A stretch of DNA of 64,000 nucleotides from Rebecca billardiae RCC1528 (GCA_965240325.2 OZ251232.1:868001-932000); one strand, 5' to 3'. Counted from the stretch's first letter, positions 2,421 through 64,000 are shown. A program made the numbers and translations. Notes: generated by a model from the sequence alone, not told the origin.

Positions 2421-2464
<44 letters not shown>

Positions 2465-3409: not shown

Positions 3410-3630
3410 CTCCCCGTCGCAACAAGTCAACAACGCCCTCGCGAGCGGGGCGAGTTCGTTGGCCAAAGTCCGGCCAAATCAAAAGCCAGCCAGCGCTAGG
3501 ACCAGGACCCCGCCGGCGAGCGTGACCTGGAGACCGTTGGCGTACTTTGGCGTCGCACGGCGCCCCCGCCATATCGTGCGCGGCTGGCTGGAGACCGAGA
3601 CCTTGCCCCCCCCCTTCTGCTGCGAGGGCA

Positions 3631-9419: not shown

Positions 9420-9835
9420 TATCTCGTCATCATCTGACAAGGCCCTTGCATCTGAGTGACCAATACCACTTACCAGTAAGACTCCACTGAGAGACGACGA
9501 TCATCACGATTCTTACTGCACCTCCGCGCAGTCTACAGTCAGAGAGAGCCGCGCATCGGATCGAACGGCGCCGGCTGAATCTCAGTCTCTCCGATCGAGC
9601 AAACAGGTGAGCGGCGAAGCACCGGCAGACGTCGGTGACTCATCAGGAGCCAACACGCCCGTGCGCCCACGGCCAGGCGTGAGCCGCGCGTACTCTGGCG
9701 CCAGTGCGATCCGCGCGGCCGGCCGCCGCCGCCGGTGGACTCGGGAGGGTGGCCTGGGCGGGATACTGCACGGGATGGCTGTGCCTCGCGCGACTGCCGC
9801 CAGGCTGCGTCGACGCCTGCTCGGCATGGATGAAG

Positions 9836-12800
9836 TCAGGGGCTCATCCGCCGCCGCCGCTGATGCAACGACGACAGCGACTGCTGCGACCGCACCGATT
9901 CCTCGCGTGCCGCAGCTGCTGATGCCGACGGCATGGCCAGCCAGGCAGGCACCGTGTCGCCGAGCGGTACCCAGCCCACGCCGGCGCACTCGACGCCGCG
10001 GCCGCGCGTGTCGCCGTCCGCGGCGGATGGCGGCGGCGCGTGCTCGTTGAGCGCGTGCATGTTCAGCGTCGCCGCCTTGAGGCACAGGTGCGCGATGGCG
10101 CCGACCACGCGGGCGGCGTCGACGTGCGGCACTGGCTCAAGCTGGTGGTGCCACGCGCCGCTCACCAGCGCGACGGGCTGCAGCCCGAAGAGCGGCGTGG
10201 CGCACGAGCGCTGCGCGACCGCGAGCAGCGCGACTGGCCCGTACGCCGGCAGGTAGGACACCGCCTCCCACGTGCCGCTCGCGGGCGCGACCGCCGCGCC
10301 GTACTCGCGCGCGTGCCACCCCGGCTGCAGCGCCTGCGCGCCCGGCGCGCTGAAGCGCAGCGCTGCCTCCACCTTGGCGCGCACGTTCGCGTGCATCTTC
10401 TGGCCAAAGTCGCCCGAGAGCTCGAGCAGCGCGTCGACGACCGAGCGCGGCAGCGCGCACGCGCGCACGAGCGCGGCGGGCGCGCCGACGACGGGCACGC
10501 CGAGCCGCGCGCACTGCGAGCTAAACTGCTCGCCGGGCGCGCTCGGGTAGAGCGTCGGGGCGGGCGGGACCAGAGGGATGGGGGCGGCGCGCTCGCGCCC
10601 GGCGCCACCACCGGCTCGGCCTGCTGAGTGGCGCGTGTCGGGCATCGACGTGCGCGCCTGCTCGGCCGCAGACGCTCGGGAGTGGCGCTCCGCTTGCGCC
10701 GCGATCCCCGCGAGCTGCAAGGACGACAGCTGCACCACGCCGCTCTCAATGAGAGACAGGCCGGCCGAGGCGCGAGCGCGGCGCCCGCGCCGCAGCTGGC
10801 CATCGGCCGCCCACGGCGACGGCGCGACGGGCTCGGGCGGAGAGGCAGGCGCCGCCATCCTGCCGTGCCCCTGGGGCGAGCTGTCGCTGGTGCGCGCGGT
10901 GCTGCGCGACACGGCGCTGCCGCGCGTGAGGGAGCTTCGGCCAGAGCTGCGCGCGAGCGCCGCCAGCGAGCCGAGCAGTGTCGGCGCGCTCCGTCGGTGC
11001 GGCCGCGGCGAGGCGTGCGCGCTGGCGCAGCGGCTGCCGCCGGAGGGCTCGGCGGGTGGCTGCGAGCTGTCGGCCGCCTTTGGCTCGGCGGAGCCTTCGC
11101 GGAAGCGCTTGAGAGCCTCCTCCCAGTCACTCGTGCTGCGCGAGCGCACGAGCGGCACGCGCGGCGCCACCTGCGCCCGACGCTCGCTCGGCGCATCACG
11201 CGCCGAGGGCTGGGGGGCCACACTCACGCCGCTGTGCCGCACGCTGAGCCGCGAGCGCTTGGACTCCGGCGAGCGGGCGGAGTCGGCCGCGCCCTCGGCG
11301 AGCGCTTCCTCCACGGCCTCGCGCACCTCGGGCGCGAGCGGCGCCGCCTCCGCGACCACGCCCACGACCTCCGCCACCTTCTCACGCAGCAGCTTGGCGT
11401 GCACGCGCGCAAACCGAGAGAGCAGCCGCGGCACGCCCGCCGCCACCACGAGCCGCACGCCGCCTGCGGGCAGCTGCTCGAAGCGCGTGGCGAGCGCATC
11501 CAACGAGCCGCCGCCGCCGCGCTCGTCGTCGTCCGCGAGCAGCAGCGAGCCCGCCGTGACGATGCCGAGCTCGTTCGCCATCTCAAAGGTCATGGAGGGC
11601 GCGGCGGTGGCATCGGCCGCGCTCGATGCCGCCGGGGCGCCGCCGGCCGCGGGCGCTCGCGAGGCCGCGGCCGCCGCGGCCGTGTCCGCGGCCGTGTCCG
11701 CGGCGGAAGCGTGGGCGGCAGCGCCCCTCCCCTCGCGCACGACGAGCAGCGCGGCGCAGTCCAGCGCGTTGAACTCGAGCAGCGCGCGCAGCGTGAGCAG
11801 AGTGAGCGCTGTGCCGTGCGTCGAGCCGCCCTGCGAGTCTTCGCGCAGCACGACGACCACCGCCTCCTTGCGCCCCTCGCTGCCCGCACCCACGCCCACC
11901 GTCGCCGCGATGCGCGACTGCATGAGCTCGCCGAGCGCGCGGCCGTCGCGCACGCCCGGCGCGAGCGCCGACTCCCCGATCAGCTCGGCGTGGAAGAGGG
12001 CGCTCGACTCCGCGCCCGGCGGGAGCTGGACCGATCGCTTGAGCGCGCTCAGCGCGCGCCGGCCCGCGCGGCCCGAGAGCGTTCGCTTCAAGGAGGACGA
12101 GGACGAGGAGAAGGTGCGCTTCATCGAGCCGGAGAGGGACGAGAGGCGGTCGCGCGCGCTGCTGCTCCTGCGCTCGGCCGCGTCCGCCGCGCTGTCCGTC
12201 TCCGTGAGCGCTGAGAGCCTGCGCTCCTCCAGCTGCGCGCTGATGGCCTGCTCGGGCGCGGAGCGCGCGCCGAGCGCGAGCGGCTGGAACAGCTCCTCGC
12301 GCAGTCCCGGCACGCACGCGAGCAGCGCGACCACGTCGTACAGGTTGAAGCCGACGACGAGGTCCCAGACCGGGTCCTCCGCCGAGCGCCCCTCGGCCTC
12401 GATGGTGCCGCCGCAGAACGTGGCGGAGAACCACGCGGCGTCGCAGCGCTCGGGGAGCCCGCGCCGCTCGGCCGAGCCGGGCGGCGCGGCCGCGCGCCGC
12501 CACAGTCCCTCGATCGAGTCGCGCTGCGCCTTGCGCAGCCGCCAGCCGATCGGGTTGCCGGACTGCGCGAGCTGGTCGTAGATGACGCGCGGCACGGGGG
12601 CGGCGTACGCCTGGCCGGGCGGCGCGGAGGCGCGGGGCGCGGGGGCGCGGCGGGGGGCATTGAGCGGGGGCGGCGCGCGGCGGTGCTCCGCGGCGCTCCG
12701 CGGAAGCGCGCGCTCGCGCGGCCGCGCGCCGCCAAAGCCTCTCACCGCGTGCCGCGAGACGACGGTGACGGGGATGGCGAGCGCGCTGCAGCCGCGGTAG

Positions 12801-15800
12801 AAGTACTGCGCGGCGCCGAGGTCGAAGGTGTTGTTGTGCGCCGAGTCGGGCACCAGCGTGCGCTCCGCCCGGCTCCGCTCCACGTCCACCCCGCCCATCG
12901 CCACCACGCGCGCCAGCCTGTCCTCGCACAGCGCCGCGTTGTCGCGCAGCAGCAGCGCCGCGTCCTTGAGCGAGGAGATGCACAGCAGCGTGACGGACTT
13001 GGGCGGCGCGGCGGAGAGCACGCGGTGCAGGAGCGCGCGGCCGGGCTCGAGCTGCCGCGCGCGCTGCGACGGCACCGCCGTCGCGTACTCCGCGCTCTCG
13101 AGGAAGCCCGCGCCGTGCGCCATGCTGCCGCCGTCCGTGCCAATGCCCACGGGCACGTGCTGCAGCCCCAGCACGTCCAGCGTGCCGCGCACGAGCCTTG
13201 CGCGCTCGTACGCGGGGGTGAGGTTGGCGATCACGCCGAGCAGCTCGATGCGGCCCTCCATCTGCAGCGCGTGCGCCATCAGCAGCGCCATCTCGTCGTC
13301 CAGGTCCTCGCCCGCGTCGCAGATCACGAGCAGCGGCACGGGCGGCGGCGCGCGCTCCGCCGCCGCCTCGAGCCTGCGCTTGGCCGCGCGGTACCGCAGC
13401 CAGAGGAGCAGCGTGGCGAAGGCGGCGCCGACGAGGGCGATCGTCGCGACGGCGGTGACGAGGACGCTGGAGTCGTCCAACACCACCACCGTCGTGACGA
13501 CGCTCTTCCCGTCGCCGTCGGCGCCGTCGGCGCCGTCGCCGCCGCCGTCGGACGCAGCCTCCGCCGCCTCCGCGCGATCGGCCGGCGGCTCAGTCCGTCC
13601 GGACCTGAAGACGATGGGCAGGTGGAAGCGCCACGCGCCGTCGACGAAGGAGCCGCGCACGGAGACGTCGAGGTGCGGCGTGCCCGGCATGAAGCCGCGC
13701 ACCGTGAAGCGCGACGACTCCATCGAGCGGTCGCCGCTCTGCGCGTCGAAGCGCACGGCGCCCGTCATGCTTTCAAAGCCGGCGGCGAGCGCGCTGTGCC
13801 GCCACCACGCCACGCGCGGCAGCACGGGCCAGCCGTTGGGGTCGCGCTCGGCGCGGCACGCGAGGAGGCCCATCGCGGCGACCGCGTCGTACGTGAGCGC
13901 GTCGATGTCGTTCGGCTCGTCCGCCTCCCACCACGCCGCGCCGAGCTGCCCCTCGGGCGGAAGGTACGCGTTGAGCTCGGCGGCGGGCGCGAGCGCGCCC
14001 GTCGCCCACTGCGCGCGGAACCGCTCCCACGCGGGCGCGCCCCAGCCGCCGGCGGCCTCGATCTGCACGCTGCCCAGCAGCGGCAGCGCCACGTCCGGCT
14101 CGGCGAGCGCGCCGTACTCGCTCGGGCCGATCATGTCCGTGAAGATCCAGTGCTGCCTCGCCGTGAACAGACCGAGCGCCGTGCCGTTGCGCACAATCGA
14201 CGGCAGGTCCGCCAGAAAGGTGAGGCACACGAGGATGCGGTGGTCGGCGCGGCGGAGCATACCGAGCGCGTCGGCGATCGAGGCGGGGTCTCCCTCGGCG
14301 AACGCCACGTTCGCGAACGCCACGCCCACCTCGGCGCCGTGCCGCTGCAGCGCCTGCGCGTACGCCGCGCCCGCGACGTCGTCGACGTGCAGCACGGCCG
14401 CGCGCGTCCATCCCCACTGCCGCACGTAGCCCACCACCAGCCGCGCGATGTTGTAGTCGCTCGGGATGGTGCGGCCGAAGGTGGGGTACTCCTGCGCGTT
14501 CGAGAGGCTCGGCGCGGTGCTCCAGTAGCTCACCATCGGCACGCGGTGGATCCCCGCCAGCGTCGCCACCGGCTCGGACACGGCCGAGCGCGCCGCGCCC
14601 ACAAGCACGTCCCACCCAGAGGCGTGGCCCCGCAGGTACTGCTCGACGCCGACGGTGGGCTGGCCCTCCGAGTGCAGCGGGCGCGGGTCGAGGACGACGT
14701 CGCAGCCCTCGTCGCGCAGCGTGTCGAACACGGGCGCGAACGTGCCGTTCCGCGCGTTGAAGTGCGACACCGCGAGCAGCGCCGTCGCGAGCTTGGTGCG
14801 CTCGCCGCGGCGCGTCGGCTCGCCCCAAAAGCGGCCGAGCAGGCCGACGCGGATCAGCACGGCCGCCTGCCCGTCGGGCGGCGGCTCCGTGCGGTCGTTG
14901 GCGAAGAGCAGCGGCGTGTCGGCCGGGCTGAACCCCTCCGTGCCGAACGTGGCGATGCGCACCACGCTCGGCACGCTCGAGCCGCCGCCGAACCGCACGT
15001 TGGCGAGGACGACGGGCGCGGAGCCGAGCGCGCGGGCGCCGTGCTCGTCAAACCGGACCGGTCCCGATGCGCCGTCGAAGCGCAGCGCGCGCAGCGAGGC
15101 CATGAGCGCGTCGGCGGTGGGCGTGGGAGCGGCATCCGCGCTCGCGTTGCATGCCGCGCGGCCGAGCGCCTCCACCGCCTCGTCCGCGAACATCACCGTC
15201 GCGGGCGGCGTGCCTGCCTCGATCAGCGCGCTCACGTTGGACGCCGACGCGGCGGCCGGCGGAAGCATCGCGCTCACGTTCGCCGCGTGGATGCGGCGCC
15301 AGGTCTCGTTGACGTAGCGCTCGTAGCGGCCGGAGCCGTCGTCGCCCGACGCCTCGATCAGCACGCTGCCGTGCAGCAGCCGCCGCTCGTTGGGCGACGT
15401 CGCCGTCTCGAGCTCGATGCTCTCCGGGCCGTTCAGGACGACGTGACCCGTCGGCCCCGCCACACCGGCCGCGGCGGCGCCGTCGGCGAGCTGGCGGATG
15501 TGGCGGCGGGAGGCGATGACGACGACGACGCGCAGCGGCTCGTCGCTGATCCCGATCATCCGCCCCATCGCGCCGCCCACCTCGCCGTCGTCGCCATCGA
15601 ATGCGAAGCCCTCGCGCACGAAAGTGAGGCGCCGCGCCGCGCCCTCGCGCTCGATCGCGTCGGCCAGGCCGCGGCCGAACGCGTCGTCCACGTGGACGAG
15701 GCCGAGGTGGCGCCAGCCGTGGGCAGCGATATGCGCGATGATCGCCAGCGCCACCACCTCGTCCGACGGCACCGTGCGCGCAAAGTAGGGCAGCTGCGCC

Positions 15801-16186
15801 GCGTCGGAGAGCGCGGGCGCCGTCGAGCGCGGCGAGATGAGCACGACGGGCAGGTGGGGCGCCGCGCGCGCCATGACGAGCGAGACAGCAGAGCGATACG
15901 CGCCTACGATCGCAACCGCGCCAGCGTCATGCGCTGCGACGAGCGCGCGCAGGCCCCGGCCCTCCTCGCCGCGCGTGTCGGCCACGCCGTCCTCCACGAG
16001 CTGCAGCCGCACCGCGCACGGCGGCGCGCTGTTCCATCGGTCGAGGGCGCCGAGGGTGGCGATGGCCAGCTCGGGTGGTGCGCCGCTGATGGGCAAAGCG
16101 ATCCCCACCCGAAGCACGGCGTCGCCCGCCGCAGGCCGCGGAGTCAGGACTGCGGCCAGCAGCGCGGCGGCGGCGAGGCGGCTCAT
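9836..16186 (-). CDS. Single-pass receptor: signal peptide - 2x Venus-flytrap (ANF-receptor/class C GPCR-type) domains - TM - HopQ1/XopQ-like nucleoside hydrolase domain - degenerate second hydrolase domain
   Basis: Two VFT copies (IVGAYRSAVS...STAPALSD...YFARTVPSD; LVGAARSAVS...STAPSLSN...TFGRTIPSD). TM at ~13400-13470. Cytosolic ICDAGEDLDD and FNLYD motifs. In-frame 135-nt GT-AG intron 12611-12745. Confidence 0.85.
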   Translation of the reverse strand: MSRLAAAALLAAVLTPRPAAGDAVLRVGIALPISGAPPELAIATLGALDRWNSAPPCAVRLQLVEDGVADTRGEEGRGLRALVAAHDAGAVAIVGAYRSAVSLVMARAAPHLPVVLISPRSTAPALSDAAQLPYFARTVPSDEVVALAIIAHIAAHGWRHLGLVHVDDAFGRGLADAIEREGAARRLTFVREGFAFDGDDGEVGGAMGRMIGISDEPLRVVVVIASRRHIRQLADGAAAAGVAGPTGHVVLNGPESIELETATSPNERRLLHGSVLIEASGDDGSGRYERYVNETWRRIHAANVSAMLPPAAASASNVSALIEAGTPPATVMFADEAVEALGRAACNASADAAPTPTADALMASLRALRFDGASGPVRFDEHGARALGSAPVVLANVRFGGGSSVPSVVRIATFGTEGFSPADTPLLFANDRTEPPPDGQAAVLIRVGLLGRFWGEPTRRGERTKLATALLAVSHFNARNGTFAPVFDTLRDEGCDVVLDPRPLHSEGQPTVGVEQYLRGHASGWDVLVGAARSAVSEPVATLAGIHRVPMVSYWSTAPSLSNAQEYPTFGRTIPSDYNIARLVVGYVRQWGWTRAAVLHVDDVAGAAYAQALQRHGAEVGVAFANVAFAEGDPASIADALGMLRRADHRILVCLTFLADLPSIVRNGTALGLFTARQHWIFTDMIGPSEYGALAEPDVALPLLGSVQIEAAGGWGAPAWERFRAQWATGALAPAAELNAYLPPEGQLGAAWWEADEPNDIDALTYDAVAAMGLLACRAERDPNGWPVLPRVAWWRHSALAAGFESMTGAVRFDAQSGDRSMESSRFTVRGFMPGTPHLDVSVRGSFVDGAWRFHLPIVFRSGRTEPPADRAEAAEAASDGGGDGADGADGDGKSVVTTVVVLDDSSVLVTAVATIALVGAAFATLLLWLRYRAAKRRLEAAAERAPPPVPLLVICDAGEDLDDEMALLMAHALQMEGRIELLGVIANLTPAYERARLVRGTLDVLGLQHVPVGIGTDGGSMAHGAGFLESAEYATAVPSQRARQLEPGRALLHRVLSAAPPKSVTLLCISSLKDAALLLRDNAALCEDRLARVVAMGGVDVERSRAERTLVPDSAHNNTFDLGAAQYFYRGCSALAIPVTVVSRHAVRGFGGARPRERALPRSAAEHRRAPPPLNAPRRAPAPRASAPPGQAYAAPVPRVIYDQLAQSGNPIGWRLRKAQRDSIEGLWRRAAAPPGSAERRGLPERCDAAWFSATFCGGTIEAEGRSAEDPVWDLVVGFNLYDVVALLACVPGLREELFQPLALGARSAPEQAISAQLEERRLSALTETDSAADAAERRSSSARDRLSSLSGSMKRTFSSSSSSLKRTLSGRAGRRALSALKRSVQLPPGAESSALFHAELIGESALAPGVRDGRALGELMQSRIAATVGVGAGSEGRKEAVVVVLREDSQGGSTHGTALTLLTLRALLEFNALDCAALLVVREGRGAAAHASAADTAADTAAAAAASRAPAAGGAPAASSAADATAAPSMTFEMANELGIVTAGSLLLADDDERGGGGSLDALATRFEQLPAGGVRLVVAAGVPRLLSRFARVHAKLLREKVAEVVGVVAEAAPLAPEVREAVEEALAEGAADSARSPESKRSRLSVRHSGVSVAPQPSARDAPSERRAQVAPRVPLVRSRSTSDWEEALKRFREGSAEPKAADSSQPPAEPSGGSRCASAHASPRPHRRSAPTLLGSLAALARSSGRSSLTRGSAVSRSTARTSDSSPQGHGRMAAPASPPEPVAPSPWAADGQLRRGRRARASAGLSLIESGVVQLSSLQLAGIAAQAERHSRASAAEQARTSMPDTRHSAGRAGGGAGRERAAPIPLVPPAPTLYPSAPGEQFSSQCARLGVPVVGAPAALVRACALPRSVVDALLELSGDFGQKMHANVRAKVEAALRFSAPGAQALQPGWHAREYGAAVAPASGTWEAVSYLPAYGPVALLAVAQRSCATPLFGLQPVALVSGAWHHQLEPVPHVDAARVVGAIAHLCLKAATLNMHALNEHAPPPSAADGDTRGRGVECAGVGWVPLGDTVPAWLAMPSASAAAAREESVRSQQSLSSLHQRRRRMSP

Positions 16187-16585
16187 GGTGTGGGGGGGTC
16201 GCTCAGTAGTGCTAGTGGAGCCGAAACGAGTACAATTTCGAGAATGTATCGTTCCGAGATCATTGATCTCCCGACCGGCGGCGGTGCACCTCCGGCCGTG
16301 GATCCTCTGCTGGTAGGCTCTTGATTATAAGGTACTGTGCGATCGATCAAGGATGGCGCGGCAACCTATGCCACGTGAGCCTTACGCATTATTAAAACAA
16401 ATAAACTGTACGCAGTCGCGTACTCATAATTCATCAACGCAATTGCACTGCGGCTAAATGAGTATCGAACCAACGAAGCTGCACCACCCCATATTCGAGC
16501 TGATGAATAGATAGCGGTGAGGTTGTATGGGGATATGGGCCGGTAAAGAGTAAAGAGAGTAAATAAAGACTCCAAGCCGGAGCGT

Positions 16586-31728: not shown

Positions 31729-31797
31729 CGGACCCGTCGACCCCGAATTCGGCGTGGCTTGTGCCGACGACGCCGGCGCAGGTTGGACGGCGGCTTG

Positions 31798-38095: not shown

Positions 38096-41000
38096 TGTCA
38101 GGGAACGCGTCTTGAGGCTTGACGGTCGAGTCGGGCGACGAGCTTCGGCTTTTGTTTGCGGTGAGGAGCACAGCTTGTTCGTGGTGCTCGGCTCATGTTT
38201 CCGCGTTCATTCAGAATCATCTGGAATACTTCGAGATGCCGCCGCCAGCCATGCTGTCCTGCTGTATTTTAGGATGAGGTTCAGGTTGATTTTGGAGGAT
38301 TTTGTGCGAGCGCCGCCGCAGCGGTCGCGCCGCCACTGTGTGACTGCGAGTAAAATGTTGGATTGGAAATTGGAAATCACTGTAGATTGGCGATTCCTTT
38401 GACACCCCCCCTCAATCCAATATGCGCTCGTCTGTGAGGACTAAGCTTGGATTATGAGTGATTTTGGGCTTGGTATTGTTTGTGCATCTGTGTGCATGAG
38501 TGAATTGGAGTCAGTAATGGTTGCCAATGCCAGGATACGGGTCATGTGCTGGGACTTCCGTGTGACGGTTTTGGGTAACCCGAGTCAGTCCTGGGCTTAT
38601 TTGCACCATTTGTTCACTCTTTGGCCTTGATCTTGGACCTTGTTATTGGGCTATGCCCTGCCTTGATATTTAATCATAGGCATCCGGAGCAGGAATATCC
38701 AGGAAATGGATACGCTCCTTGGGAAATTTGTTGGCTCCCTTGTTTTTGCCTTTGTTGTAATTGTTGGCCTTGGGGCGTAGCTCTGGGTGGAGCCTCCAAC
38801 ACTGCTGGGCAGTATGGTTCTTGAGACCACAGTGAGTGCACCGTTTGCCGGTGTCCGAGTTATTCGGCCCGCTCTCGCCATTGGCTGGAGCCTTTTGGGC
38901 CTGAGCGGCGAACACTTCGGCGCCCTCAAAGTCACCGCGTCGCCGCGTGCCTTGCTGATAATCAGCATTTTGGCGTATCTTGGAATAGTTTTCGGTCTCT
39001 CTCCCCTTGGTCTGATGGAGTAGCTTCATTGAGCCGTGCCGTTTGTAGGCATCTTCCATCTGGGCCATTATCTGGTCAGTGTTATCCACACATTGCTCGG
39101 GCGTGAGCGCTCCGAAGTGCGAGATAACTGACTCGTAGACTTGGGGATGGTCGTGCATGCTGTTATACAGCTTGAAGACCAACATCGTAGCATCGTCCAG
39201 ATTCCCATATCGAGATGAGCGGACTTGCTCGACGGATTTCTTGATAATGTCCGATGCGCCAATGGGCGACACCTTTGTCGGGTATAACTTCAGGAATTCA
39301 TCCCTGAGTTCGGACATAGTTGTGATCTTGAGCTCGCGCTCAAATATCTGTAGCAGCAGCGCCAGATCCAAGTAGTTCTTGGTCGGATCGCTGATGTGCA
39401 GCTTCGATTCCAGATAGGCGAATAACTGAGGCTCGATAGAGTCCTTCAGCTGCTTGAATATCGCTGCCGCAGATCGATCGTAGACCGATCCGATCTTGTT
39501 GGCGTCAGCGTTGTCAGCCTTGTATGGGTCGATTTTGGCTGCGTCTTTCACCCATTTGTCTTTGGCAATGAGTTGAAAGCCGGATAGCTTGCTATCCTTG
39601 GGCTCCATTATGTCAGGTGTGACATCTGAGGATTTGCCCTTGTAGTAGGTGCTCACTTCTGCGAGTGCATCCCGTATCGCGCTGTGTACCGCGCGCTTGG
39701 ATTTCAGAGCCGACTGTGTCAGCTTGTGTGTGGCGGGTGTATCCACTCCTGCCGAGGATTCGCGTGCCATGAACACACGTTCCTTCTTGGTTGGATTAGA
39801 GTCTGTGACTCCTCCTTCGATGACTATCCAGTCACGTTTCTTCGACTCAAGTGCATTGGTCGATGTGTCGCGCGCGCTCTGTGGCGATTCGCGCTCTACC
39901 TTCGAGCGAGGAGTGACCCTCGTCGAGGCTGTGGTGCCTTCTTTGGGCTTCTTCACGCTCGTTCTGTCCAGCGGTGATGCATGTGCATCCGCGGCAGCTT
40001 CGGCGGAATACTCTTCCTTGCAAGAGTGTGGCGTTGTGATGGCTGACGCAGCAGATGCATGCGCACGCGCGTCGCGCTCGCCAACTTGGTTTTGCTGCGG
40101 CTTTGCCGTCAAGCAGGTGTATGATGCCCCCCCTGCATCGCATGCGCTTCCTACGTTCGACGCGAGTCGATACGTGCCAGACGAGGACTCTGCCGTCTCT
40201 GCGGCGGTCATCTCGCGGCTGCTTGTGTCGCTCGTGGCGAGCAGCTCGGCTTCGGAAGCCATCGTGAGGCTGGTAATTTTGGGGTAAACGTATTTGTTTG
40301 GGTCAGGCGCATCAATAATAAATGCGGCCGCTGACTTGATGCTTGAGCTCGCTGTGACAGAGTCACGTGTCGTAGCATCTTGGAGCATAGTTTGCTCTGC
40401 CAGACCATACAGGTCGTTTGCGTCGCACTCATCGGTGCTAATGTCCTCGTTCGATCGGTCAGACTCAGACACAGTGTCATGCGCGCGAGGCTGCAGACTG
40501 ACTGCGGCGGTGGCACGACCTGCGCTGTCACAGGCGGCGGCCAGATGGCCAGCACGCGGAGCAGCGTCGGCAGGCTCGAGGGCCTCGACGGTCGGAGCGG
40601 CATCAGCGGCAGCAGCGTCGAGCGCTACATCTGCCCCGGAACGCTCGGTGACCTCGTTCGATGACTCGGAGGCCGCAAGGCACTCCTTGAGCTGCGGGCT
40701 CTCAGCCGCGCGCTCTTGAACCGCGCTCGCGGGCGCAGAGTCCCGGGCGGTAGTTGTTGAGATCCCCTGCGCAACGACGTGCGTGCGGATGGAGTGGCGC
40801 GATGGCGGGGGATGCGAGCGGCAACGCTCCTCCTCACCGCGCTGTGCGCGAACCTCCTCCTCAAGGTGATCCTTGATTGACTCGGCATGAATCTGGTCAA
40901 CACGCGGTGCGATCGCACTCGACGCGTGGCTGCCTGAGTACAGGTCAGCGGTGTTGCCAGGCCCGTAAGCGCTGGAGATGGGCTTGCGGAGAAGCGTGAG

Positions 41001-41545
41001 CTTCTCGCCTTGCCGGTTCTTCTCAGCCTGCATGCCCCTCAGGGCAGCGGCGAGGTAGTCTGGCGTGCGCTTGCGCGCGATCGCCGATGAGCCGCGCGGC
41101 ATTGCCGCGCGCTCTGCCACGCCTGGCTTCAACCCAATGAGGGGAGCAACTGGGGCGGGCTGATGGCCGTTCACGTCCTTGCCGCTGTTCTCGTCGTCTC
41201 CATCCTTGCCCAAGTTCTCCCAGCACCGTGCTAGCATGTCAGGGAACGCGTCTTGAGGCTTGACGGTCGAGTCGGGCGACGAGCTTCGGCTTTTGTTTGC
41301 GGTGAGGAGCACAGCTTGTTCGTGGTGCTCGGCTCATGTTTCCGCGTTCATTCAGAATCATCTGGAATACTTCGAGATGCCGCCGCCAGCCATGCTGTCC
41401 TGCTGTATTTTAGGATGAGGTTCAGGTTGATTTTGGAGGATTTTGTGCGAGCGCCGCCGCAGCGGTCGCGCCGCCACTGTGTGACTGCGAGTAAAATGTT
41501 GGATTGGAAATTGGAAATCACTGTAGATTGGCGATTCCTTTGACA
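38096..41545 (-). mobile_element. Gag-only LTR retrotransposon (Copia-like gag), 309-bp LTRs, 5-bp TSD GGCTG
   Basis: LTRs 38096-38404 and 41237-41545, TGTCA...TGACA, identical by eye. GGCTG at 38091-38095 and 41546-41550, with the empty site visible near 42562. G-run PPT on the minus strand next to 38404. Confidence 0.93.
38670..41237 (-). CDS. gag: Gag-like protein with CCHC zinc knuckle
   Basis: Open frame of ~855 codons. CTHCGLKNHTAQQCWRLHPELRP is a Copia-type knuckle. No protease, integrase or RT motifs follow. Confidence 0.8.
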   Translation of the reverse strand: MLARCWENLGKDGDDENSGKDVNGHQPAPVAPLIGLKPGVAERAAMPRGSSAIARKRTPDYLAAALRGMQAEKNRQGEKLTLLRKPISSAYGPGNTADLYSGSHASSAIAPRVDQIHAESIKDHLEEEVRAQRGEEERCRSHPPPSRHSIRTHVVAQGISTTTARDSAPASAVQERAAESPQLKECLAASESSNEVTERSGADVALDAAAADAAPTVEALEPADAAPRAGHLAAACDSAGRATAAVSLQPRAHDTVSESDRSNEDISTDECDANDLYGLAEQTMLQDATTRDSVTASSSIKSAAAFIIDAPDPNKYVYPKITSLTMASEAELLATSDTSSREMTAAETAESSSGTYRLASNVGSACDAGGASYTCLTAKPQQNQVGERDARAHASAASAITTPHSCKEEYSAEAAADAHASPLDRTSVKKPKEGTTASTRVTPRSKVERESPQSARDTSTNALESKKRDWIVIEGGVTDSNPTKKERVFMARESSAGVDTPATHKLTQSALKSKRAVHSAIRDALAEVSTYYKGKSSDVTPDIMEPKDSKLSGFQLIAKDKWVKDAAKIDPYKADNADANKIGSVYDRSAAAIFKQLKDSIEPQLFAYLESKLHISDPTKNYLDLALLLQIFERELKITTMSELRDEFLKLYPTKVSPIGASDIIKKSVEQVRSSRYGNLDDATMLVFKLYNSMHDHPQVYESVISHFGALTPEQCVDNTDQIMAQMEDAYKRHGSMKLLHQTKGRETENYSKIRQNADYQQGTRRRGDFEGAEVFAAQAQKAPANGESGPNNSDTGKRCTHCGLKNHTAQQCWRLHPELRPKANNYNKGKNKGANKFPKERIHFLDIPAPDAYD

Positions 41546-42634: not shown

Positions 42635-42747
<113 letters not shown>

Positions 42748-49522: not shown

Positions 49523-49553
<31 letters not shown>

Positions 49554-56402: not shown

Positions 56403-59400
56403 TCAGACTCGTTCGTCGCCGCGCGGGAGCGGGACAGATCGGTCTCCGCCAGCACCACCAGTCTGAGGCGCAGCTCGGTGAATGAACGGCGACTGGTACT
56501 GCCGACCAGCCTCACGCTGCTGAGCACGCTGCTGAGCGCCGGCTTGCTCAGCCGCGCCCCCGAGGCCCACGAACGTCGCAGCCCTCTCCATCACGTCCGA
56601 GATCCTGATGGAGCGCGCGTCGGAGTGACGAGGAGACGCACGAGGGTCGGACGAACGGACCCGCCGTCCTGCCGTGGCCTGCTGCTCCTCGCGAAGTAGC
56701 CTGGCCTCGGAGCGACCCATCTGACCGCGCCGCACCGCTTGGATGCGTTCAGCGGCCTGCAGCCTTGCAGCCTCCTGCGCGATCGGTGGGGCCGGCGACA
56801 GGCGCGAAGGGGGTGGTCAGCTGACGGTTGGGAGCCAGCCCGGGCCTGCTGAGGGCGCACGCGCTCGCGCTCAAAAGTACCTGCTGAGCCGCTTCCTTGA
56901 CTTTGCGATTCCGCTTGCGCACGCAGTAGACGCAGGTGACGACGACGATGAGCACAACGAGGCCAAACGCGGCGTAGATAACAATCTGCGCGAGGCGCGA
57001 GGCGCGACGTGGGACGCGCGCACTGTTCAGCTCAGAGCGCTCGCGAGCGCGAGCGCGGCCGCGGTGGGTGCGCGGACCTGGACCGTCAAGGTCAGGGTGC
57101 CAATGCTCTGGCTGATAATGTCGACCGATTGTGGCGGCGGCGCGACGTTCGGCGGCGGTGCCTTTGGCGGCGGCGGGGCAGGTGGAGGCGAACCCGGCAG
57201 CGGAGATGGTGGAGGTGATGGCGGCGGCGATGGTGGGGGCGGACTCGGAGGAGGCTTGGGAGGTGAGGGCGGAGCCGGAGGCGGAGAGGGCGGTGACGGC
57301 GGCGGTGACGGCGGCGGCGGCGACGGAGGTGGTGATGGTGGCAATGGCGGCGACGATGGCGGCGGTGGTGGCGCTGGCGGAGACGGCGGGCTTGGAGGCG
57401 GCGACGAGGGCGTGTCGAATTCGCACGAGCCGTCCGGGTACGTGGCGAGCGAGTTGTAGTTGGCGGCGTTCACCGACGTGCAACCGCCGATGGCGCAGCT
57501 GCCATCGTCCTCGTCCGCCGCCGAGTCGTAGTTGTCCGCAGCGACGTTCGTGCAACCCTGCGCGGGGAACTGGCAGCCGCCCGTCACGGTCGCCGACGGG
57601 TCGTAGTTCACAGCCGCCGTGTTGGTGCAGCCAAAGTACTGGCAGCTGCCACTGTCGACCTCCGCGTCCGAGCGGAAGTTGAGCGCGCTGCTGTCCGTGC
57701 AGCCGCTGATGGGGAAGATACACGAGCCGTCCGGCGTGTTGGCAGTCGAGTCGTAGTTGCTCGCCAGCGTCGAGAGGCAGCCGCTGAAGATGCACGAGGA
57801 CGCGACGAGCTGCGTGACGAGCGAGTCGAAGTTGTCGGCGCTCACGATGCTGCAGCCGCTTACCGGCGGGATGCAGCTGCCGTCGTCGTCGGTCGCTGCC
57901 GAGTTGAAATTGGTCGCAGTGATGTCCGTGCACCCGGGCACGATGCAGCTGCCGTCGTCCGTGTTCGCCGTGGAGTCGTAGTTGTCCGATGCCGAGTCCG
58001 TGCAGCCAAACGCTGGGCACGTGCAGCTGCCGTCGTCGATCGTCGCGGACGGGTCGTACCCGGAGCAGAGCGAGTTGGTGCAGCCGGGGTAGACGCACGA
58101 GCCGTCGTTGACGTTCGCGCCCGAGTCGAAGTTCTCCGCATCGGCTTCCGTGCATCCTGTGACCGGCAGGATGCAGTTGCCCGAGGAGTCGGTCGCCGTC
58201 GAGTCGTAGTTGAACGCGATCGGGTTGAGGCAGCCGAGGAACACGCAGCCCTGGTTGACCGTGGCGAGCGGGTTGTAGTTGTCCGCGTCGGGTGCCGTGC
58301 AGCCGGCGACGGCGATGTTGATGCAGTTGTTCGAGTTGACGGTCGCACGTGAATTGTAGTTCTCGGCCAGCGAGTTGAGGCAGCCGGTGATGACGCACGA
58401 GCCGTCGTCACCGGCCGCGTTTGAGTTGTAGTTGTCAGCGGTGGAGTCCGTGCAGCCCAGCGCCGGGATGATGCACGAGCCCGCGTCGGCAACGTCGGCC
58501 GTCGAGTCGTAGTTCGTGGCGCTCGTGTCCAGGCAGCCCGCGTACTGGCACGAGCCGTCGTTCGTGTCCGCGGTCGACAGGTAGCTGATCGAGCTCGGGT
58601 CCGTGCAGCCAAACTTGGGGTAGATGCACGTGCCGTCATTGTCGGTCGCGGTCGAGTCGTAGTTGGTCGCAAAAGTGAGCGTGCAGCCGCGGAAGACGCA
58701 CGTGCCGTCGTCGACAGTCGCGCCGGCCACGTAGTTCACGGCGTTCGAGTCGAGGCAGCCAGGGATCGCCCCCGTGCACGAGCCGTCGTTCAGAGTCGCG
58801 GCCGAGTCATAGTTGTCCGCGGCTGTCTGGGTGCAACCGGGGATGACGCACGAGCCGTCGTCGACCGTCGCCGAGTCGTCAAAGTTGATCGCGCGCGTGT
58901 CAATGCAGCCGCGGATGAGGAAGAAGCAGCTGCCGTCGTTGAAGGTGGCGGCCGAGTTGTAGTTGTCCGCGTTGGTGTTCGTGCAGCCGGCAACGACGCA
59001 CGTGCCATCGTCGACCGCGGCCGTCGAGTCGAAGTTGTCCGCGATGGGATCGGTGCACCCACCGGCTGGATCGATGCACGAGCCGTCGTTCGTGTTGGCG
59101 CTCGAATCAAAGTTGGTGGCGGTAGGATCGAGACAGCCAAGCACCTCGTACGTGCAGCCCGTGTTGATGGTCGCCACCGAGAGGTAGTTGAGCGCGGTAG
59201 AGTCGACACAACCCAGGATAGTGTACTGGCACGTCGTGTCTCCCTGTGCCGTTGCATTCGAGTTGTAGTTGGACGCGAGCGAGTCAAGGCAGCCGAAGAT
59301 GTCGTACACGCACGAGCCGTCGTCAACGGTTGCTTGCGCGTCGAAGTTGGTCGCGTTGTCGGCGGTGCAGCCGCCGAACGCGCAGGACTCGTCGTCGATC

Positions 59401-62400
59401 GTCGCCGCCGAGTCGAAGTTGTCCGCGTCCACATCCGTGCAGCCCGGGTTGGGGCACGCCGCCGCCGAGTACATCGCTTGCAGCTGGGTGTTGAAGCACG
59501 TGTCCAGGCGGCGCCGACGACCACCGGCGGGCGGAGTCCACACGACAACGAGCTCGGCGGCGCGGGTGGCGTACTGCTCGCCTGCGTCGTTGAGCACGGG
59601 GTTGGACGGCCCACTGGTCAGCGTCAGCCCGAGAGCATCGCGTGCCGACTTGACCAGGGTGGTCATAGCCGTCGTGTCCGTCAAAGTCGACACGATCTCA
59701 CCGCTGCTCCCGACGCACAGCGAAATGGCCTCGTTCAGCACGGCGGCCTCAATGGCGGCGTTCGACGTGTACGGGAGGAAGAGCGCCTCCAGCTGTTTAA
59801 GTAGCGCGTCGAGCAGCGCGCTCGCCCGAACCACGTAGTACGACGCCGCGTCCTGGGCCAGGTACCGCTGCATGGGGCGGTAGGTGAGGATGTTGACGGT
59901 GGACGCGAGCTCGAAGCAGCGGCGCAGTTCGGCCTGCGGGTTGCTCGGCGGAGAGTCCAAATCCTGCATGTACATGTACATCGTGGTGAGCGGCGTGATC
60001 GCCCTGGAGACGAGCGGTGCGCGCAGCGTGTACGTGAGAGACGTCCCGCTCAATGTGTCGCGGCACTGCGCCTGCGGCTCGATGCGCAGCGCGGCGTCGC
60101 TGTTGGTGTACAGCAGCTCATAGGCGCCGTTCACGGAGGAGACGGCTGTGCCCACGACGGCGCCGTTGGCTTGCACCGCCTTGATGACGCACGAACGGCG
60201 CTGCGCGACGATCTGCACGACGCCACGCGAGTACGCAAACTGGCAGCTGCCGTCGTTGAAGGCCGCGATCGGGTCGTAGTTGATCGCGTTCGAGTTGGTG
60301 CAGCCCTTGTACGAGCACGGGCCAGACCGCGTGGCGGTGGTGACGTAGTTGTTGGCCGTCGGGTCGGTGCAGCCGACCACGTGCGGCACGCAATTCTTGC
60401 CGTCGACGGTAGCGAAAGGGTTGAAGTTCTGCGCGGTGACGTCCATGCAGCCGGCGATGACGCACGTCGACGCGGCGAACTCGACGTTCGCCAGCGAGTT
60501 GTAGTTGCTTGCGCTCGTCTTGGTGCAGCCAAACACCTTGGCGATGCAGCTGCCGTCGTCCGCGTTGGCCGTGGGGTTGTAGTTGAGCGCGTTCTTCGCC
60601 GTGCAGCCGCGGTACGCCGGGATGCAGCCCTGGTTCTCGGTGGCGGCGGGGCGGTAGTTGAGCGCGGTCGAGTCGGTGCAGCCGAACACCGGGAACGTGC
60701 AGCTCTTGTCATCCACGTTGGCCAGCGAGTTGTAGTTGAGCGCGCGCGTTGCGATGCAGCCGGACACGGGGAGGACGCACGAGCCGTCGCTCACAGTGGC
60801 CAGCGAGTTGTAGTTGAGCGCGGAGGCGTCCCGGCAGCCGAGCACGGCGAAGACGCAGCTGCCGTCGTCGACGGTGGCGGACGAGTCGTAGTTTTGCGCG
60901 TTCGGCCCCATGCAGCCCAGAGATGGCTGGATGCAGCCCTGGTTGACGTTGGCGTCCGAGCGGTAGTTGAGCGCGCCCGTGTCCGTGCAGCCGAGCACGG
61001 CTTGCGTGCACGAGCCTGCGAGCAGCGTGTTGGCGAGCGAGTTGTAGTTGAGCGCGGTCGGGTCCGTGCAGCCCAGCACCACTTGCACGCACGTGTCCGG
61101 AACCGCGTCCGTGTTGGCGAGCGAGTTGTAGTTGATCGCCGTCGGGTCGCGGCAGCCTGGGCGCGGCAGCGTGCAGTCGGACGCGCTGAGCTGCACCGTC
61201 GCCAGCGAGTTGTAGTTCGTCGCGAGCGAGTTGCGGCAGCCGGTGATGTACGGGATGCAGATGGACGCGTCGCTCTCCGCCGGGCTGGCGGACGAGTCGT
61301 AGTTCAGGCTGCCCTCGACGTTGCACTTGAGCTGCGCGTACTCGCACGTGCCGTCATACACCGTCGCACTCGAATCGTAGTTGCTGGCGCTGGTCACGGT
61401 GCACCCAGCCACGTCGTAGGTGCAGCCGCCGCTGTCCACGGTGGCGTCCGAGCGGAAGTTGGAGGCCGTCGAGTCGGTGCAGCCAAGCACGCCGTACGCG
61501 CAGTTGCCGTCGTTGGCCGTCGCTTCCGAGTTGTAGTTGAGGGCCGTGGGGACGTTGCAGCCAAAGATGACACACTGGCCGCTGTCCACAGCGGCGAGCG
61601 AGTCGTAGTTGGTCGCGCGCGAGTCCGTGCAGCCGACGCGTGGAAACACGCACGAGCCCTGCAGCAGCTGGTTCGCCGTCGAGTCGTAGTTGTCCGCGCC
61701 CGTGTTCGTGCAGCCGGGGTAGACGCAGCTGCCGTCGTCGAGCGACTTGGCGCTGTCGTAGTTGGAGGCAGCGGGGTCGGTGCAGCCGCGGCAGCTGAAG
61801 TCGCACGACGAGAAGACCGTGGCGAGCGAGTTGTAGTTGCACGCGGTGGAGACCGTGCACCCGGCGATGTTGTACTCGCACGAGCCGTCGTTTGTGTCCG
61901 CCGCGTTGTCGAAGTTGAGCGCGACCGTGTCCGTGCAGCCCAGCGTGTATGGCTGGCAGCTGCTGTACGTGTCTGCGAGCGAGTTGTAGTCGGCCGCCCA
62001 CGAGTCGGTGCAGCCCAGGACGGCGTAGACGCAGACGATGTCGCCCTGCTGCGTCGCGGCCGAGCGGTAGTTGGTGGCCTCCGAGTCGGTGCAGCCGAAG
62101 ACGGGGTATGCGCAGCACGAGGGCTCGGTGGGCGAGCAGCCGTACGCCATCGAGTTGTAGTTCTCAGCGATGGGGTCGATGCAGCCGGCGAGCGGCGGCG
62201 GGGGCGACGGCGGCGGTGGGCTTGGCGGAGGGAAGGGCGGCGCCGGGGGCGGGCTCGGCGGCGGGCTCGGCGGTGGGCTCGGCGGAGACTTGGGTGATTC
62301 TGGTGGTGGCGACGGCGGCGCCGACGGCGGTGGTCGGCTTGGTGGTGGCAATGGCGGCGGGCTTGGTGGCGGGCGGGGGGGCGGGCTAGGCGGGGGGGTC

Positions 62401-64000
62401 GGCGGTGGCGGTGGCGACGGAGGCGGGCTCGGTGGTGGGCTTGGCGGTGGGCTGGGCGGAGGTGGGCTTGGCGGCGGGCTTGGCGGCGGAAGCGGTGGCG
62501 GTGATGGTGGCGGCGATGGCGGTGGCAATGGTGGCGGTGGGCTGGGCGGTGGGCTGGGCGGCGGGCTGGGCGGCGGGCTGGGCGGCTGTGACGGCGGTGG
62601 TGATGGCGGCGGCCTCGGTGGTGGGCTCGGCGGTGGTGAGGGCGGCGGGCGCGGGGGCGGCGATGGCGGGGGGCTTGGAGGTGGGTTGGGTGGCGGTGAA
62701 GGCGGTGGTGTTGGCGGCGGGCTGGGTGGCGGCGACGGTGGCGGCGAGGGCGGAGGGCTTGGAGGCGGGCTTGGCGGTGGCGATGGAGGCGGCGATGGCG
62801 GTGGACTCGGGGGCGGGCTTGGTGGCGGAGGGGGTGGCGGGCTCGGCGGTGGACTGGGCGGTGGCACGGGCGGTGGACTGGGCGGTGGCGAGGGCGGGGG
62901 TCTCGGGGGCGGGCGTGGCGGCGGCGAGGGCGGAGGGGTGGGCGGCGGTGGTGACGGCGGCGGTGGTGATGGCGGTGGTGACGGCGGCGGGCTTGGTGGC
63001 GGATATGGTGGCGGTGGCGATGGTGGCGGAGGGCTTGGCGGTGGCGATGGTGGCGGCGGCGGTGGTGGTGATGGCGGTGGAGATGGCGGCGGTGGTGATG
63101 GCGGCGGGCTTGGCGGCGGGGGTGGCGGGGGTGACGGTGGCGGAGATGGTGGCGGTGGGCTCGGCGGCGGCGATGGTGGCGGCGGCGGTGGCGGTGACGA
63201 TGGCGGCGGCGGTGATGGCGGCGGGCTTGGCGGCGGGGGTGGCGGGGGTGACGGTGGCGGAGATGGTGGCGGTGGGCTCGGCGGCGGCGATGGTGGCGGC
63301 GACGGTGGCGGTGACGGCGGCGGAGACGGCGGCGGTGGAAAGGGTGGAGGACTGGGTGGCGGTGTGGGCGGCGGCGGCGAGGGCGGCGGCGGGGACGGCG
63401 GCGGGGACGGCGGCGGCAACGGTGGAGGCGGCTGTGGCGGCGGAGACGGTGGCGGCGACGGTGGCGGGCTTGGTGGCGGTGTTGGCGGTGGCGGAGAGGG
63501 CGGCGGTGGGCTTGGCGGCGGTGACGGCGGCGGCGTCGGTGGAGGCGGCTGTGGCGGCGGAGACGGTGGCGGCGTCGGTGGAGGCGGCTGTGGCGGCGGA
63601 GACGGTGGCGGCGACGGCGGCGGGCTAGGTGGCGGCGTCGGTGGAGGCGGAGAGGGCGGCGGCGGGCTTGGTGGCGGTGACGGCGGCGGCGTCGGTGGAG
63701 GCGGAGAGGGCGGCGGTGGGCTTGGTGGCGGTGACGGCGGCGGCGTCGGTGGAGGCGGAGAGGGCGGCGGTGGGCTTGGTGGCGGTGACGGCGGCGGCGT
63801 CGGTGGAGGCGGAGAGGGCGGCGGCGGGCTTGGCGGCGGTGACGGCGGCGGCGTCGGTGGAGGCGGAGAGGGCGGCGGTGGGCTTGGTGGCGGTGACGGC
63901 GGCGGCGTCGGTGGAGGCGGAGAGGGCGGCGGTGGGCTTGGTGGCGGTGACGGCGGCGGCGTCGGTGGAGGCGGAGAGGGCGGCGGTGGGCTTGGTGGCG
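56403..64000 (-). CDS. Giant type I membrane glycoprotein (5'-partial): extensin-like SPPP tracts, ~52 GCTD-type Cys/Asp repeats, TM, cytosolic IQ motif
   Basis: Frame appears open to the window end. Repeats GCTDxxAxNYxxxAxxDDGSC in blocks of ~25 and ~27. Introns 56986-57077 and 56775-56880 join a TM exon (IVIYAAFGLVVLIVVVTCVYCV-RKRNRK) and a tail exon (AAERIQAVRRGQMGR). Confidence 0.85.
63637..64000. repeat. 54-bp coding minisatellite (18-aa Pro/Ser/Thr unit on minus strand)
   Basis: GTCGGTGGAGGCGGAGAG recurs at 63637, 63691, 63745, 63799, 63853, 63907 and 63961. Confidence 0.9.

Follow-up and report, generated by a model that had tools for sequence, protein, structure and literature searches.

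On the minus strand of the window, a stretch of 64,000 nucleotides of Rebecca billardiae RCC1528 DNA, positions 9836..16186 form a single stop-free open reading frame (ORF) of 2116 codons plus a stop codon; all coordinates below refer to this strand. The DNA here is 75% GC and holds many long overlapping ORFs on both strands. GC contents at the first, second and third codon positions were 0.76, 0.58 and 0.94, respectively, over the whole frame, and the difference between GC3 (0.94) and GC2 (0.58) extended from the first codon block to the last. The GC profile showed AT-rich troughs on either side of the ORF, at 9100-9500 and 16300-16500, and none inside it. The closest relatives of the 2116-aa protein were haptophyte and pelagophyte proteins. 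The relative P0161, derived from an MMETSP transcript, was collinear with aa 909-2115 of the ORF, i.e. from the transmembrane (TM) helix to the C-terminus.

On the best reading of the sequence, the product of 9836..16186 is a type I receptor-enzyme that crosses the membrane once, from a marine alga with GC-rich DNA. It is highly improbable that two adjoining genes, or a gene and non-coding DNA, merely look like one ORF. Such an artefact would fit the frequency of stop-free frames and of long overlapping ORFs on both strands in DNA of 75% GC, and a protein database look-up found no exact record of the 2116-aa protein. However, the codon periodicity runs throughout the frame, the Pfam search of overlapping ORFs gave no matches, the intergenic GC troughs lie outside the ORF only, and collinearity with relatives, among them a transcript, extends over the TM helix, both hydrolase-like domains (NH1 and NH2, below) and the C-terminal end. 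The proposal of an earlier note on this DNA, that the flytrap and hydrolase parts belong to one gene rather than two, is thus supported by the continuous periodicity without an internal GC trough. It is also supported by a TM-to-hydrolase spacing common to three relatives, including the assembled transcript that is collinear from TM helix to C-terminus.

The N-terminus (aa 1-21, 16124..16186), read by eye from the sequence, is signal-peptide-like, with a short basic stretch, then a core rich in Ala and Leu, and a small-residue site. Two Venus-flytrap (VFT) domains follow, and Pfam matched ANF_receptor twice in the protein (whole-protein E 8e-54); the two domains scored 101 and 92.9 bits, where the curated cut-off is 25.4. 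VFT1 (aa 46-386, 15029..16051) covered positions 8-341 of the 353 in the PF01094 profile (E 9e-29 for the VFT1 piece). Its PDB sequence matches were 4mlc (a bacterial extracellular ligand-binding protein), mGluRs, T1R3, GABA-B2 and CaSR. VFT2 (aa 445-836, 13679..14854) matched PF01094 at positions 30-232 of 353 (E 2.7e-26) and Peripla_BP_6 (PF13458) at positions 2-223 of 343. It matched CaSR, T1R1, mGluRs and GABA-B1 in the PDB, and aligned contiguously with both VFTs of Emiliania-type proteins. The ectodomain has five cysteines in total and no cysteine-rich domain.

An acidic Gly/Asp-rich stalk (aa 837-905, 13472..13678), recognised by sequence inspection and with codon periodicity retained, leads to a single predicted TM helix (aa 906-930, 13397..13471; Kyte-Doolittle maximum 2.31). 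The sole other Kyte-Doolittle peak falls within the NH1 fold. Directly after the helix, an Arg/Lys run forms a basic juxtamembrane segment (aa 931-948, 13343..13396), in agreement with the positive-inside rule. Hence, the signal peptide and the single helix followed by basic residues that the earlier note had described were both recovered. Its two complete VFTs were recovered in part: there are two ANF_receptor matches, but the profile match of VFT2 stops at position 232 of 353 and does not cover the last third.

The cytosolic part begins with NH1, the first part of which (aa 949-1147, 12746..13342) was recognised with Pfam, the NCBIfam XopQ profile, PDB phmmer searches, and an AF2 model with Foldseek. 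The second part (aa 1193-1310, 12257..12610) is a further stretch aligned to XopQ, with pLDDT >90. Pfam assigned aa 956-1144 to IU_nuc_hydro (PF01156; 39.5 bits, cut-off 34.2). The NCBIfam XopQ profile (NF041355) matched with E 4.6e-42 and 144.2 bits; this does not reach the equivalog cut-off of 500 bits, so NH1 is not XopQ proper. In the PDB, phmmer matched NH1 to XopQ (4kl0/4p5f/7jlu_B) with E ~5e-31, whereas the best canonical enzyme reached 1.6e-5. The AF2 model of NH1 (pLDDT 86.6) gave a similar ranking in Foldseek, with E 1.8e-22 and TM 0.75 for XopQ versus E 2.7e-10 and TM 0.62 for a canonical nucleoside hydrolase (NH). There were 108 PDB matches at E <= 0.001, and the best 50 of these 108 were all NH-fold proteins. 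Identity to XopQ was ~26%.

The DxxxDxDD motif (D957, D961, D963, D964; 13295-13318) occupies columns that were at least 90% conserved among 44 relatives, with D in 25-28 of 33 aligned relatives. An A-x-N-N-x-x-D block (aa 1116-1122, 12821-12841), also in the first part of NH1, was near-invariant, and equivalents of Y1283-D1284 (12335-12340, in the second part) were kept in 32 of the 33 aligned relatives. In HopQ1, the positions assigned to Ca2+, ribose and substrate are D101, D107, D108, A263, N265, Y383 and D384 (PMC3608555). NH1 carries equivalents of these residues, as mapped by motif rather than by direct alignment to HopQ1. DxxxDxDD in place of the canonical DxDxxxDD is a mark of the HopQ1-like family (PMC3608555), and NH1 was rejected as a canonical inosine-uridine (IU) NH on this motif register. 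Sequence and model together place NH1 in the HopQ1-like protein (HLP)/XopQ subgroup of the NH fold. The assignment by the earlier note of the cytosolic domain to the HopQ1/XopQ type is borne out by an NH-fold match that is specifically XopQ-like in NCBIfam, PDB phmmer and Foldseek, as is its D-x3-D-x-D-D spacing, which is present and near-invariant among relatives. Of the further motif series it had listed, the A-x-N-N-x-x-D block and Y-D are present, but the last series reads N-L-Y-D-V rather than the N-L-Y-D-P of XopQ.

The two parts of NH1 are separated by a probable in-frame intron of 135 nt (12611..12745, ORF aa 1148-1192), which starts with GTGAG and ends with CAG. In the alignment of NH1 to XopQ, the gap has precisely the limits of this segment. 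The segment was missing from XopQ, from nearly all of ~150 relatives among the matches listed, and from P0161, P0027, P0002 and P0003. Furthermore, it lacks codon periodicity (0.89/0.80/0.91), contains short tandem repeats, and is disordered in the model (pLDDT <50). The intron predicted in the earlier note is therefore probable, given its splice-type ends, its in-frame length and the matching gap in XopQ and the relatives.

The ~800 aa C-terminal to NH1, overlooked in the first reading of the sequence, hold a second domain. A Ser/Arg-rich linker (aa 1311-1441, 11864..12256), disordered according to its composition and with pLDDT 30-57 over most of its length, is followed by NH2 (aa 1442-2006, 10169..11863), a degenerate XopQ-like domain identified by hhalign, phmmer and the model. 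The NH2 block aligned to the NH1 block over 272 columns (hhalign probability 100, E 2.4e-41), and phmmer matched NH2 to the second of the two domains in tandem relatives. Its folded segments had pLDDT 75-92, with a disordered insertion at ~10718-11293. NH2 keeps one of the four motif aspartates, and Y-D is replaced by Y-G. The C-terminal tail (aa 2007-2116 and the stop codon, 9836..10168) is collinear with P0161 to aa 2115. Because a 1187-aa model had a pTM of 0.51, it does not fix the arrangement of the domains. The cytosolic part is, as judged from these alignments, a tandem of an active-looking NH1 and a degenerate duplicate, NH2.

Sequence comparison showed that the TM-NH1-NH2 stretch is collinear between the billardiae protein and its relatives. 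In a neighbour-joining tree without support values, the billardiae protein clustered with P0002, P0161 and P0003. Each of these four proteins has one DxxxDxDD motif, and the TM helix starts 44-46 aa ahead of it (helix start/motif start 912/957 in the billardiae protein, 898/943 in P0002, 1119/1163 in P0003 and 364/410 in P0161). The billardiae protein thus has the features of a TM-anchored tandem HLP clade, namely a helix 44-46 aa before the motif, an NH1 with the motif and an NH2 without it. P0192 was placed in the same clade and has no helix. The ectodomains differ: PBP_like_2 (PstS-like) in P0002 from Diacronema lutheri, OpuAC in the transcript P0161, and Laminin_G_3 (LamG)/cadherin-like in P0003. 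Hence, these sequences place the billardiae gene in a clade where one TM-NH1-NH2 chassis carries differing, mostly solute-binding-type ectodomains. Searches of the protein relatives found no second VFT-NH fusion. The pairing of ANF_receptor with IU_nuc_hydro singled out in the earlier note is accordingly the only VFT fusion found, but it is one member of a clade with varied ectodomains.

The enzymatic output suggested by the name 'receptor nucleoside hydrolase' is probably wrong. XopQ homologues hydrolyse 2'cADPR to ADPR by cutting the ribose-ribose O-glycosidic bond, an activity lost when two conserved aspartates are mutated (bioRxiv 10.64898/2026.06.15.732069). It is very unlikely that NH1 is a purine or pyrimidine nucleoside hydrolase that links nutrient uptake or sensing to base recycling. 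The IU_nuc_hydro match above the Pfam cut-off and the resemblance of the clade's ectodomains to nutrient-binding proteins of ABC transporters are in line with such salvage, but DxxxDxDD stands where canonical enzymes have DxDxxxDD, these enzymes match NH1 far more weakly than XopQ does, and standard nucleosides are not substrates of XopQ/HopQ1 proteins (PMC3608555). The substrate of XopQ itself is not confidently transferable to NH1, because identity is ~26%, the score is 144 against 500 bits, and XopQ is highly substrate-specific.

Our main reading, to which we give a probability of roughly 0.55, is that the protein hydrolyses a ribosyl-nucleotide messenger and is gated by a ligand, with NH1 as the putative catalytic domain and NH2 in a presumed regulatory role. 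An extracellular small solute would close or re-pair the flytraps, and the helix and the linker of fixed length might relay this change to NH1 and NH2. By analogy with the kinase-homology domain of natriuretic-peptide receptors, NH2 would act as a regulatory pseudo-enzyme, and the transmitted change would turn NH1 on or off. NH1 would hydrolyse a ribosyl-linked nucleotide messenger; the likeliest candidate is a cyclic ADP-ribose isomer that is opened to ADP-ribose, as in bacterial XopQ. The signal outside would thereby set the messenger level inside.

Alternatively, NH1, and perhaps NH2, could bind a ribosyl compound such as ADP-ribose without converting it and serve as a scaffold or two-sided sensor with output through partner proteins. 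XopQ was long held inactive and was crystallised with ADPR bound, some multidomain proteins bind sugars through NH-like folds (PMC8910321), and the catalytic residues are clearly lost from NH2. We nevertheless consider a binding module unlikely, as NH1 retains all residues assigned to Ca2+ and ribose binding, near-invariant across the family, and a recent report describes bacterial XopQ as a very efficient enzyme (bioRxiv 10.64898/2026.06.15.732069).

It also seems improbable that the helix only localises a constitutively active hydrolase, with flytraps that capture solutes or mediate adhesion and exert no control over activity. Four close relatives (P0019, P0031, P0035 and P0110) have a helix near the N-terminus and no recognisable ectodomain, and therefore the chassis may work without a sensor. 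However, they lie on short metagenome contigs whose genes were called in prokaryote style, and they may themselves be truncated. Moreover, the fixed helix-motif spacing of 44-46 aa beneath four unrelated ectodomains is a feature needed for coupling, not for tethering.

A wider scheme is possible, though we regard it as doubtful. A TIR-type messenger system of their own, based on a cyclic ADP-ribose isomer, may operate in haptophytes and pelagophytes and be wired directly to surface solute receptors, in which amino-acid, phosphate and glycine-betaine-type ectodomains gate a signal-erasing XopQ-type O-glycosidic hydrolase. Receptors like P0159 of Prymnesium parvum, a flytrap receptor with a TIR-like cytosolic domain, would be candidate writers, and bacterial XopQ effectors would be relatives or mimics of a eukaryotic class of signal-terminating enzymes.

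Algal HopQ1-like proteins of Aureococcus, Thalassiosira and Emiliania were reported in 2018 from CLANS and phylogeny, as a clade separate from the bacterial and fungal ones (PMC6019455). The accessible part of that paper analyses the hydrolase domain only, with no mention of a receptor architecture, a tandem domain or anchoring in the membrane. We found no description of a VFT-TM-XopQ-like receptor in the literature searched. The novelty claimed in the earlier note therefore holds for the receptor architecture within that literature, but not for algal HopQ1-like proteins as such, which PMC6019455 already presents. Family and type of organism are the same there as here, but the billardiae domain is part of a receptor chassis that occurs with different ectodomains.

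Among known systems, the XopQ/HopQ1/RipB type III effectors are the best matches to NH1 in both sequence and structure; they belong to the same NH-fold subgroup and share DxxxDxDD, A-x-N-N-x-x-D and the Y-D residues. They are, however, bacterial effectors, whereas the billardiae protein is eukaryotic, has a probable intron and is not a secreted effector. XopQ proper is a stand-alone protein with a free N-terminal secretion region. In contrast, NH1 starts at aa 949, internal to the protein behind the signal peptide, two flytraps and the helix, and is followed by a degenerate duplicate. Canonical IU-NHs (PF01156; IU-NH, RihA/B/C) share the fold and the metal-binding aspartate cluster with NH1, but differ in motif register, match much more weakly, and likely cleave a different bond.

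Class C GPCRs (mGluR, CaSR, T1R, GABA-B) include the nearest solved relatives of both flytraps by sequence. A class C GPCR was rejected on one membrane helix instead of seven and the lack of a cysteine-rich domain. Natriuretic-peptide receptor guanylyl cyclases combine ANF_receptor, a TM helix, a kinase-homology domain and a cyclase, and signal through a nucleotide messenger. The billardiae protein likewise combines a flytrap, a single helix, and a putative catalytic domain with a cytosolic pseudo-enzyme that would be regulatory by analogy. It differs in its two tandem flytraps, in an output with a hydrolase rather than a cyclase fold, and in the order of domains, as the pseudo-domain lies after the catalytic domain here and before it in natriuretic-peptide receptors. 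A receptor guanylyl cyclase was also rejected, as Pfam gave no PF00211 match in the protein at E <= 0.1.

Kinase, phosphatase and cyclase outputs are known among single-pass receptor enzymes, and a receptor with a XopQ-type hydrolase output would, if true, add a new chemistry to them. The XopQ/HopQ1 fold, which has so far been studied for its use by bacteria against TIR signalling in plants, would likewise gain a native eukaryotic signalling context. To our knowledge, the perception of solutes by ecologically important phytoplankton is poorly understood, and the flytrap, PstS-like and OpuAC-like ectodomains of this clade suggest that such organisms use these proteins to sense dissolved nutrients or osmolytes.

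The minus-strand ORF at 9836..16186 is a single stop-free frame of 2116 codons (residue numbers below refer to the unspliced ORF). The DNA contains ~75% G+C, so long stop-free frames can arise by chance, and many other ORFs overlap this frame on both strands. The overlapping ORFs did not match any family in a Pfam scan and had the mirror-image composition that is expected for non-coding frames; they were dropped as a product of the high G+C content. The codon-position G+C contents of the 2116-codon frame (GC1/GC2/GC3 of 0.76/0.58/0.94) are kept in nearly all 45-codon blocks, from the first to the last. Furthermore, intergenic DNA in this window is marked by AT-rich troughs (GC 0.39-0.48); such troughs are found directly outside both ends of the ORF (9100-9500 and 16300-16500), and none lies within it. 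Hence, the 2116-codon frame is the coding one. An exact look-up of its product returned no record of an identical protein.

Several neighbouring ORFs encode ordinary eukaryotic domains, with no obvious tie to the receptor gene. Pfam identified an endonuclease/exonuclease/phosphatase (2042-3466, minus strand), a calponin-homology protein (23569-24636, plus strand), the C-terminal end of the large subunit of ribonucleotide reductase (26560-28584, minus strand) and a MatE protein (31759-33420, plus strand), while a weak RING finger (48966-50951, plus strand) stayed under the Pfam cut-off. The stretch 38000-44000 has a lower GC (0.53-0.62) and a positive GC skew, and includes an 880-aa ORF without a Pfam match (38670..41312, minus strand). 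A long degenerate G-rich tandem array with periods of 6 to 117 nt (GC 0.79, GC skew +0.50) occupies 62300-64000, up to the window end, and overlaps the start of a 2130-aa ORF (57027..63419, minus strand), also without a Pfam match.

The earlier note had described a signal peptide, two Venus-flytrap domains (VFT1 and VFT2) and one membrane helix followed by basic residues, and these features were recovered. Pfam found ANF_receptor twice (whole-protein E 8e-54). VFT1 alone covers the ANF profile nearly in full (positions 8-341 of 353), and VFT2 alone covers positions 30-232, with its last third lacking profile support. The closest solved structures of both flytraps are those of metabotropic glutamate receptors, CaSR, T1Rs and GABA-B receptors, together with a bacterial extracellular ligand-binding protein. 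A hydropathy scan gave one membrane helix (residues 908-930), preceded by an acidic Gly/Asp stalk and followed by a basic run. The N-terminus is signal-peptide-like, and six of the eight N-x-S/T sequons are N-terminal to the helix. Helix, basic run, N-terminus and sequon placement together predict a topology with extracellular flytraps and a cytosolic hydrolase.

The first cytosolic domain (NH1) matched IU_nuc_hydro of Pfam at residues 956-1144, over the curated cut-off, and XopQ was the top NCBIfam model (E 4.6e-42). In a phmmer search of PDB with residues 930-1500, three XopQ entries (4kl0, 4p5f and 7jlu_B) were found at E ~5e-31, whereas the best canonical nucleoside hydrolase reached 1.6e-5. 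The fold comparison that had been asked for gave the same order. An AlphaFold2 model of NH1, built on 43 stand-alone relatives (mean pLDDT 86.6, pTM 0.86), retrieved XopQ structures on top in Foldseek against PDB (E ~2e-22, TM 0.72-0.75), with canonical nucleoside hydrolases next (~1e-10, TM ~0.6). The N-terminal aspartates of NH1 (D957-x3-D961-x-D963-D964) follow the DxxxDxDD register, the mark that divides HopQ1-type proteins from canonical DxDxxxDD enzymes (PMC3608555). These results bear out the assignment to the HopQ1/XopQ subgroup. Conservation among the relatives is complete or at least 90% in the four aspartate columns, in A-x-N-N-x-x-D (residues 1116-1122) and in Y1283-D1284, and the predicted catalytic set of NH1 is intact. 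NH1 is not XopQ itself, as its identity to XopQ is ~26% and it scores 144 bits, whereas the equivalog cut-off is 500.

Between ORF residues 1147 and 1193 the alignment with XopQ is interrupted, with no jump in the XopQ numbering, and almost all of the best 150 of 1216 relatives gave two aligned segments separated by this gap. In an alignment of five sequences, residues 1148-1192 are the sole ORF-specific insertion with splice-like ends. The corresponding 12745..12611 is an in-frame segment of 135 nt that starts with GTGAG and ends with CAG, lacks codon periodicity, contains short tandem repeats, and is the sole internal low-confidence stretch of the NH1 model. We therefore take this segment, from sequence and model, as the intron that had been proposed at 12611-12745. 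If retained, it would form a surface loop and leave the frame unbroken. All searches were run with the unspliced ORF or with single exons taken by reference. A second ORF-specific insertion, at residues 1793-1859, was dropped as an intron because its ends do not resemble splice sites. The metagenome contig L004, with an NH1 that is 63-71% identical, has two matching parts ~850 nt apart (2221-3071), and ORF residues 1103-1192 have no match on it, a pattern suggestive of an intron in the same place as in the window gene, or close to it.

The cytosolic domain had previously been traced as far as ~12275. NH1 is indeed present there, but the remaining 800 residues hold a second domain, NH2. A PDB sequence search with this tail did not give any match, and a BLAST comparison between the tail and NH1 gave only a suggestive hit (E 0.006), while in phmmer many tandem relatives matched the tail with their second half. 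Profile-profile comparison decided the matter: with column blocks of both domains taken from one alignment of 33 proteins, hhalign aligned NH2 with NH1 over 272 columns (probability 100, E 2.4e-41), spanning ORF residues 1442-2006. In a 1187-aa model, NH2 segments are folded (pLDDT 75-92) around long disordered inserts, and a disordered Ser/Arg-rich linker separates NH1 and NH2; the pTM of 0.51 does not establish the packing of the domains. At the four motif columns NH2 has D, T, G and T, with Y-G in place of the Y-D of NH1. Judged by these residues, NH2 is most likely a pseudo-enzyme.

The XopQ-like family comprised 1216 cluster representatives at E <= 0.001, of which 228 also passed E <= 1e-30. 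We inspected the best 150 of the 1216 and scanned the members that have a long N-terminal region with Pfam. Among the matches listed, the best relatives are 55-67% identical; named sources include Diacronema lutheri, Prymnesium parvum, Pelagophyceae sp. CCMP2097 and MMETSP transcriptomes. The domain occurs alone, in soluble tandem proteins and in fusions with other signalling modules. The entire cytosolic chassis of the window protein is common to three relatives with other ectodomains: P0002 (D. lutheri KFE25_002800, 2408 aa; PBP_like_2), P0161 (an MMETSP transcript, 1559 aa; OpuAC-type) and P0003 (2341 aa; Laminin_G_3 and cadherin-like domains). In all four proteins a strong helix begins 44-46 residues before the single aspartate motif. 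P0161 aligned with ORF residues 909-2115 in one BLAST segment (E 3e-156), without the 45 intron-coded residues, and adjoins the window protein in a neighbour-joining tree of 146 domains that carries no support values; in this tree the clade of the window protein has nine members, eight of them with the helix. By sequence, the predicted helix-to-motif spacing is thus fixed, and differing ectodomains are mounted on a conserved chassis.

Some soluble tandem relatives (P0001, P0012, P0182 and P0183) have DxxxDxDD in both domains, ~355 residues apart, and the four receptor-type proteins have it in the first domain only. The XopQ-like domain is C-terminal in STAND/NLR-like proteins (Guanylate_cyc - AAA_16 - TPR - NH) and TPR-only proteins (P0094, P0138, P0008; P0082, P0100, P0104, P0144, P0147, P0194). 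Two more fusions combine a protein kinase with a XopQ-like domain (P0123) and a XopQ-like domain with a sulfotransferase (P0109, P0151). A second protein with flytrap and XopQ-like domains was found neither among long proteins searched by NH region and by VFT region, nor among mid-length proteins or the best 150 of 1216 representatives, nor on metagenome contigs searched across the VFT2-TM-NH1 junction. Likewise, a tblastn search of every retrieved locus with the VFT part did not reveal one. The upstream ORFs of contig L003 had no match in a Pfam scan.

In single-pass receptor cyclases, a flytrap ectodomain acts via a pseudo-kinase domain. In the mechanism that we propose for the window protein, the flytraps would bind a solute and alter the arrangement of NH1 and NH2 through the helix, by which NH1 would be switched. 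NH1 would then remove a ribosyl-nucleotide messenger; production is less likely. As ABC-transporter-type binding folds occur among its ectodomains, the clade may sense dissolved nutrients or osmolytes. Bacterial XopQ homologues convert 2'cADPR to ADPR, an activity abolished by mutating two conserved aspartates (bioRxiv 10.64898/2026.06.15.732069). P0159 (Prymnesium parvum AB1Y20_007595, 3377 aa) has Laminin_G_3, six ANF_receptor stretches and, near its C-terminus, a weak TIR_2 match (residues 3060-3136; 24.9 bits, cut-off 28). Together with the reported activity of XopQ on a TIR product, this match hints at flytrap receptors that might make the TIR-type signal erased by XopQ.

A full-text literature search for the flytrap-TM-XopQ-like architecture returned nothing relevant. 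In a review of the fold, the only context given for multidomain NH-like proteins is a bacterial, carbohydrate-related one (PMC8910321). Algal HopQ1-like proteins (HLPs) were previously reported as a separate clade, of which the paper, in excerpt, covers the hydrolase domain only (PMC6019455). Since algal HLPs are known and the architecture was absent from the literature searches, we rate the window protein not as a wholly new kind but as a novel variation on kinds that are already known, namely receptor enzymes and HLP hydrolases.
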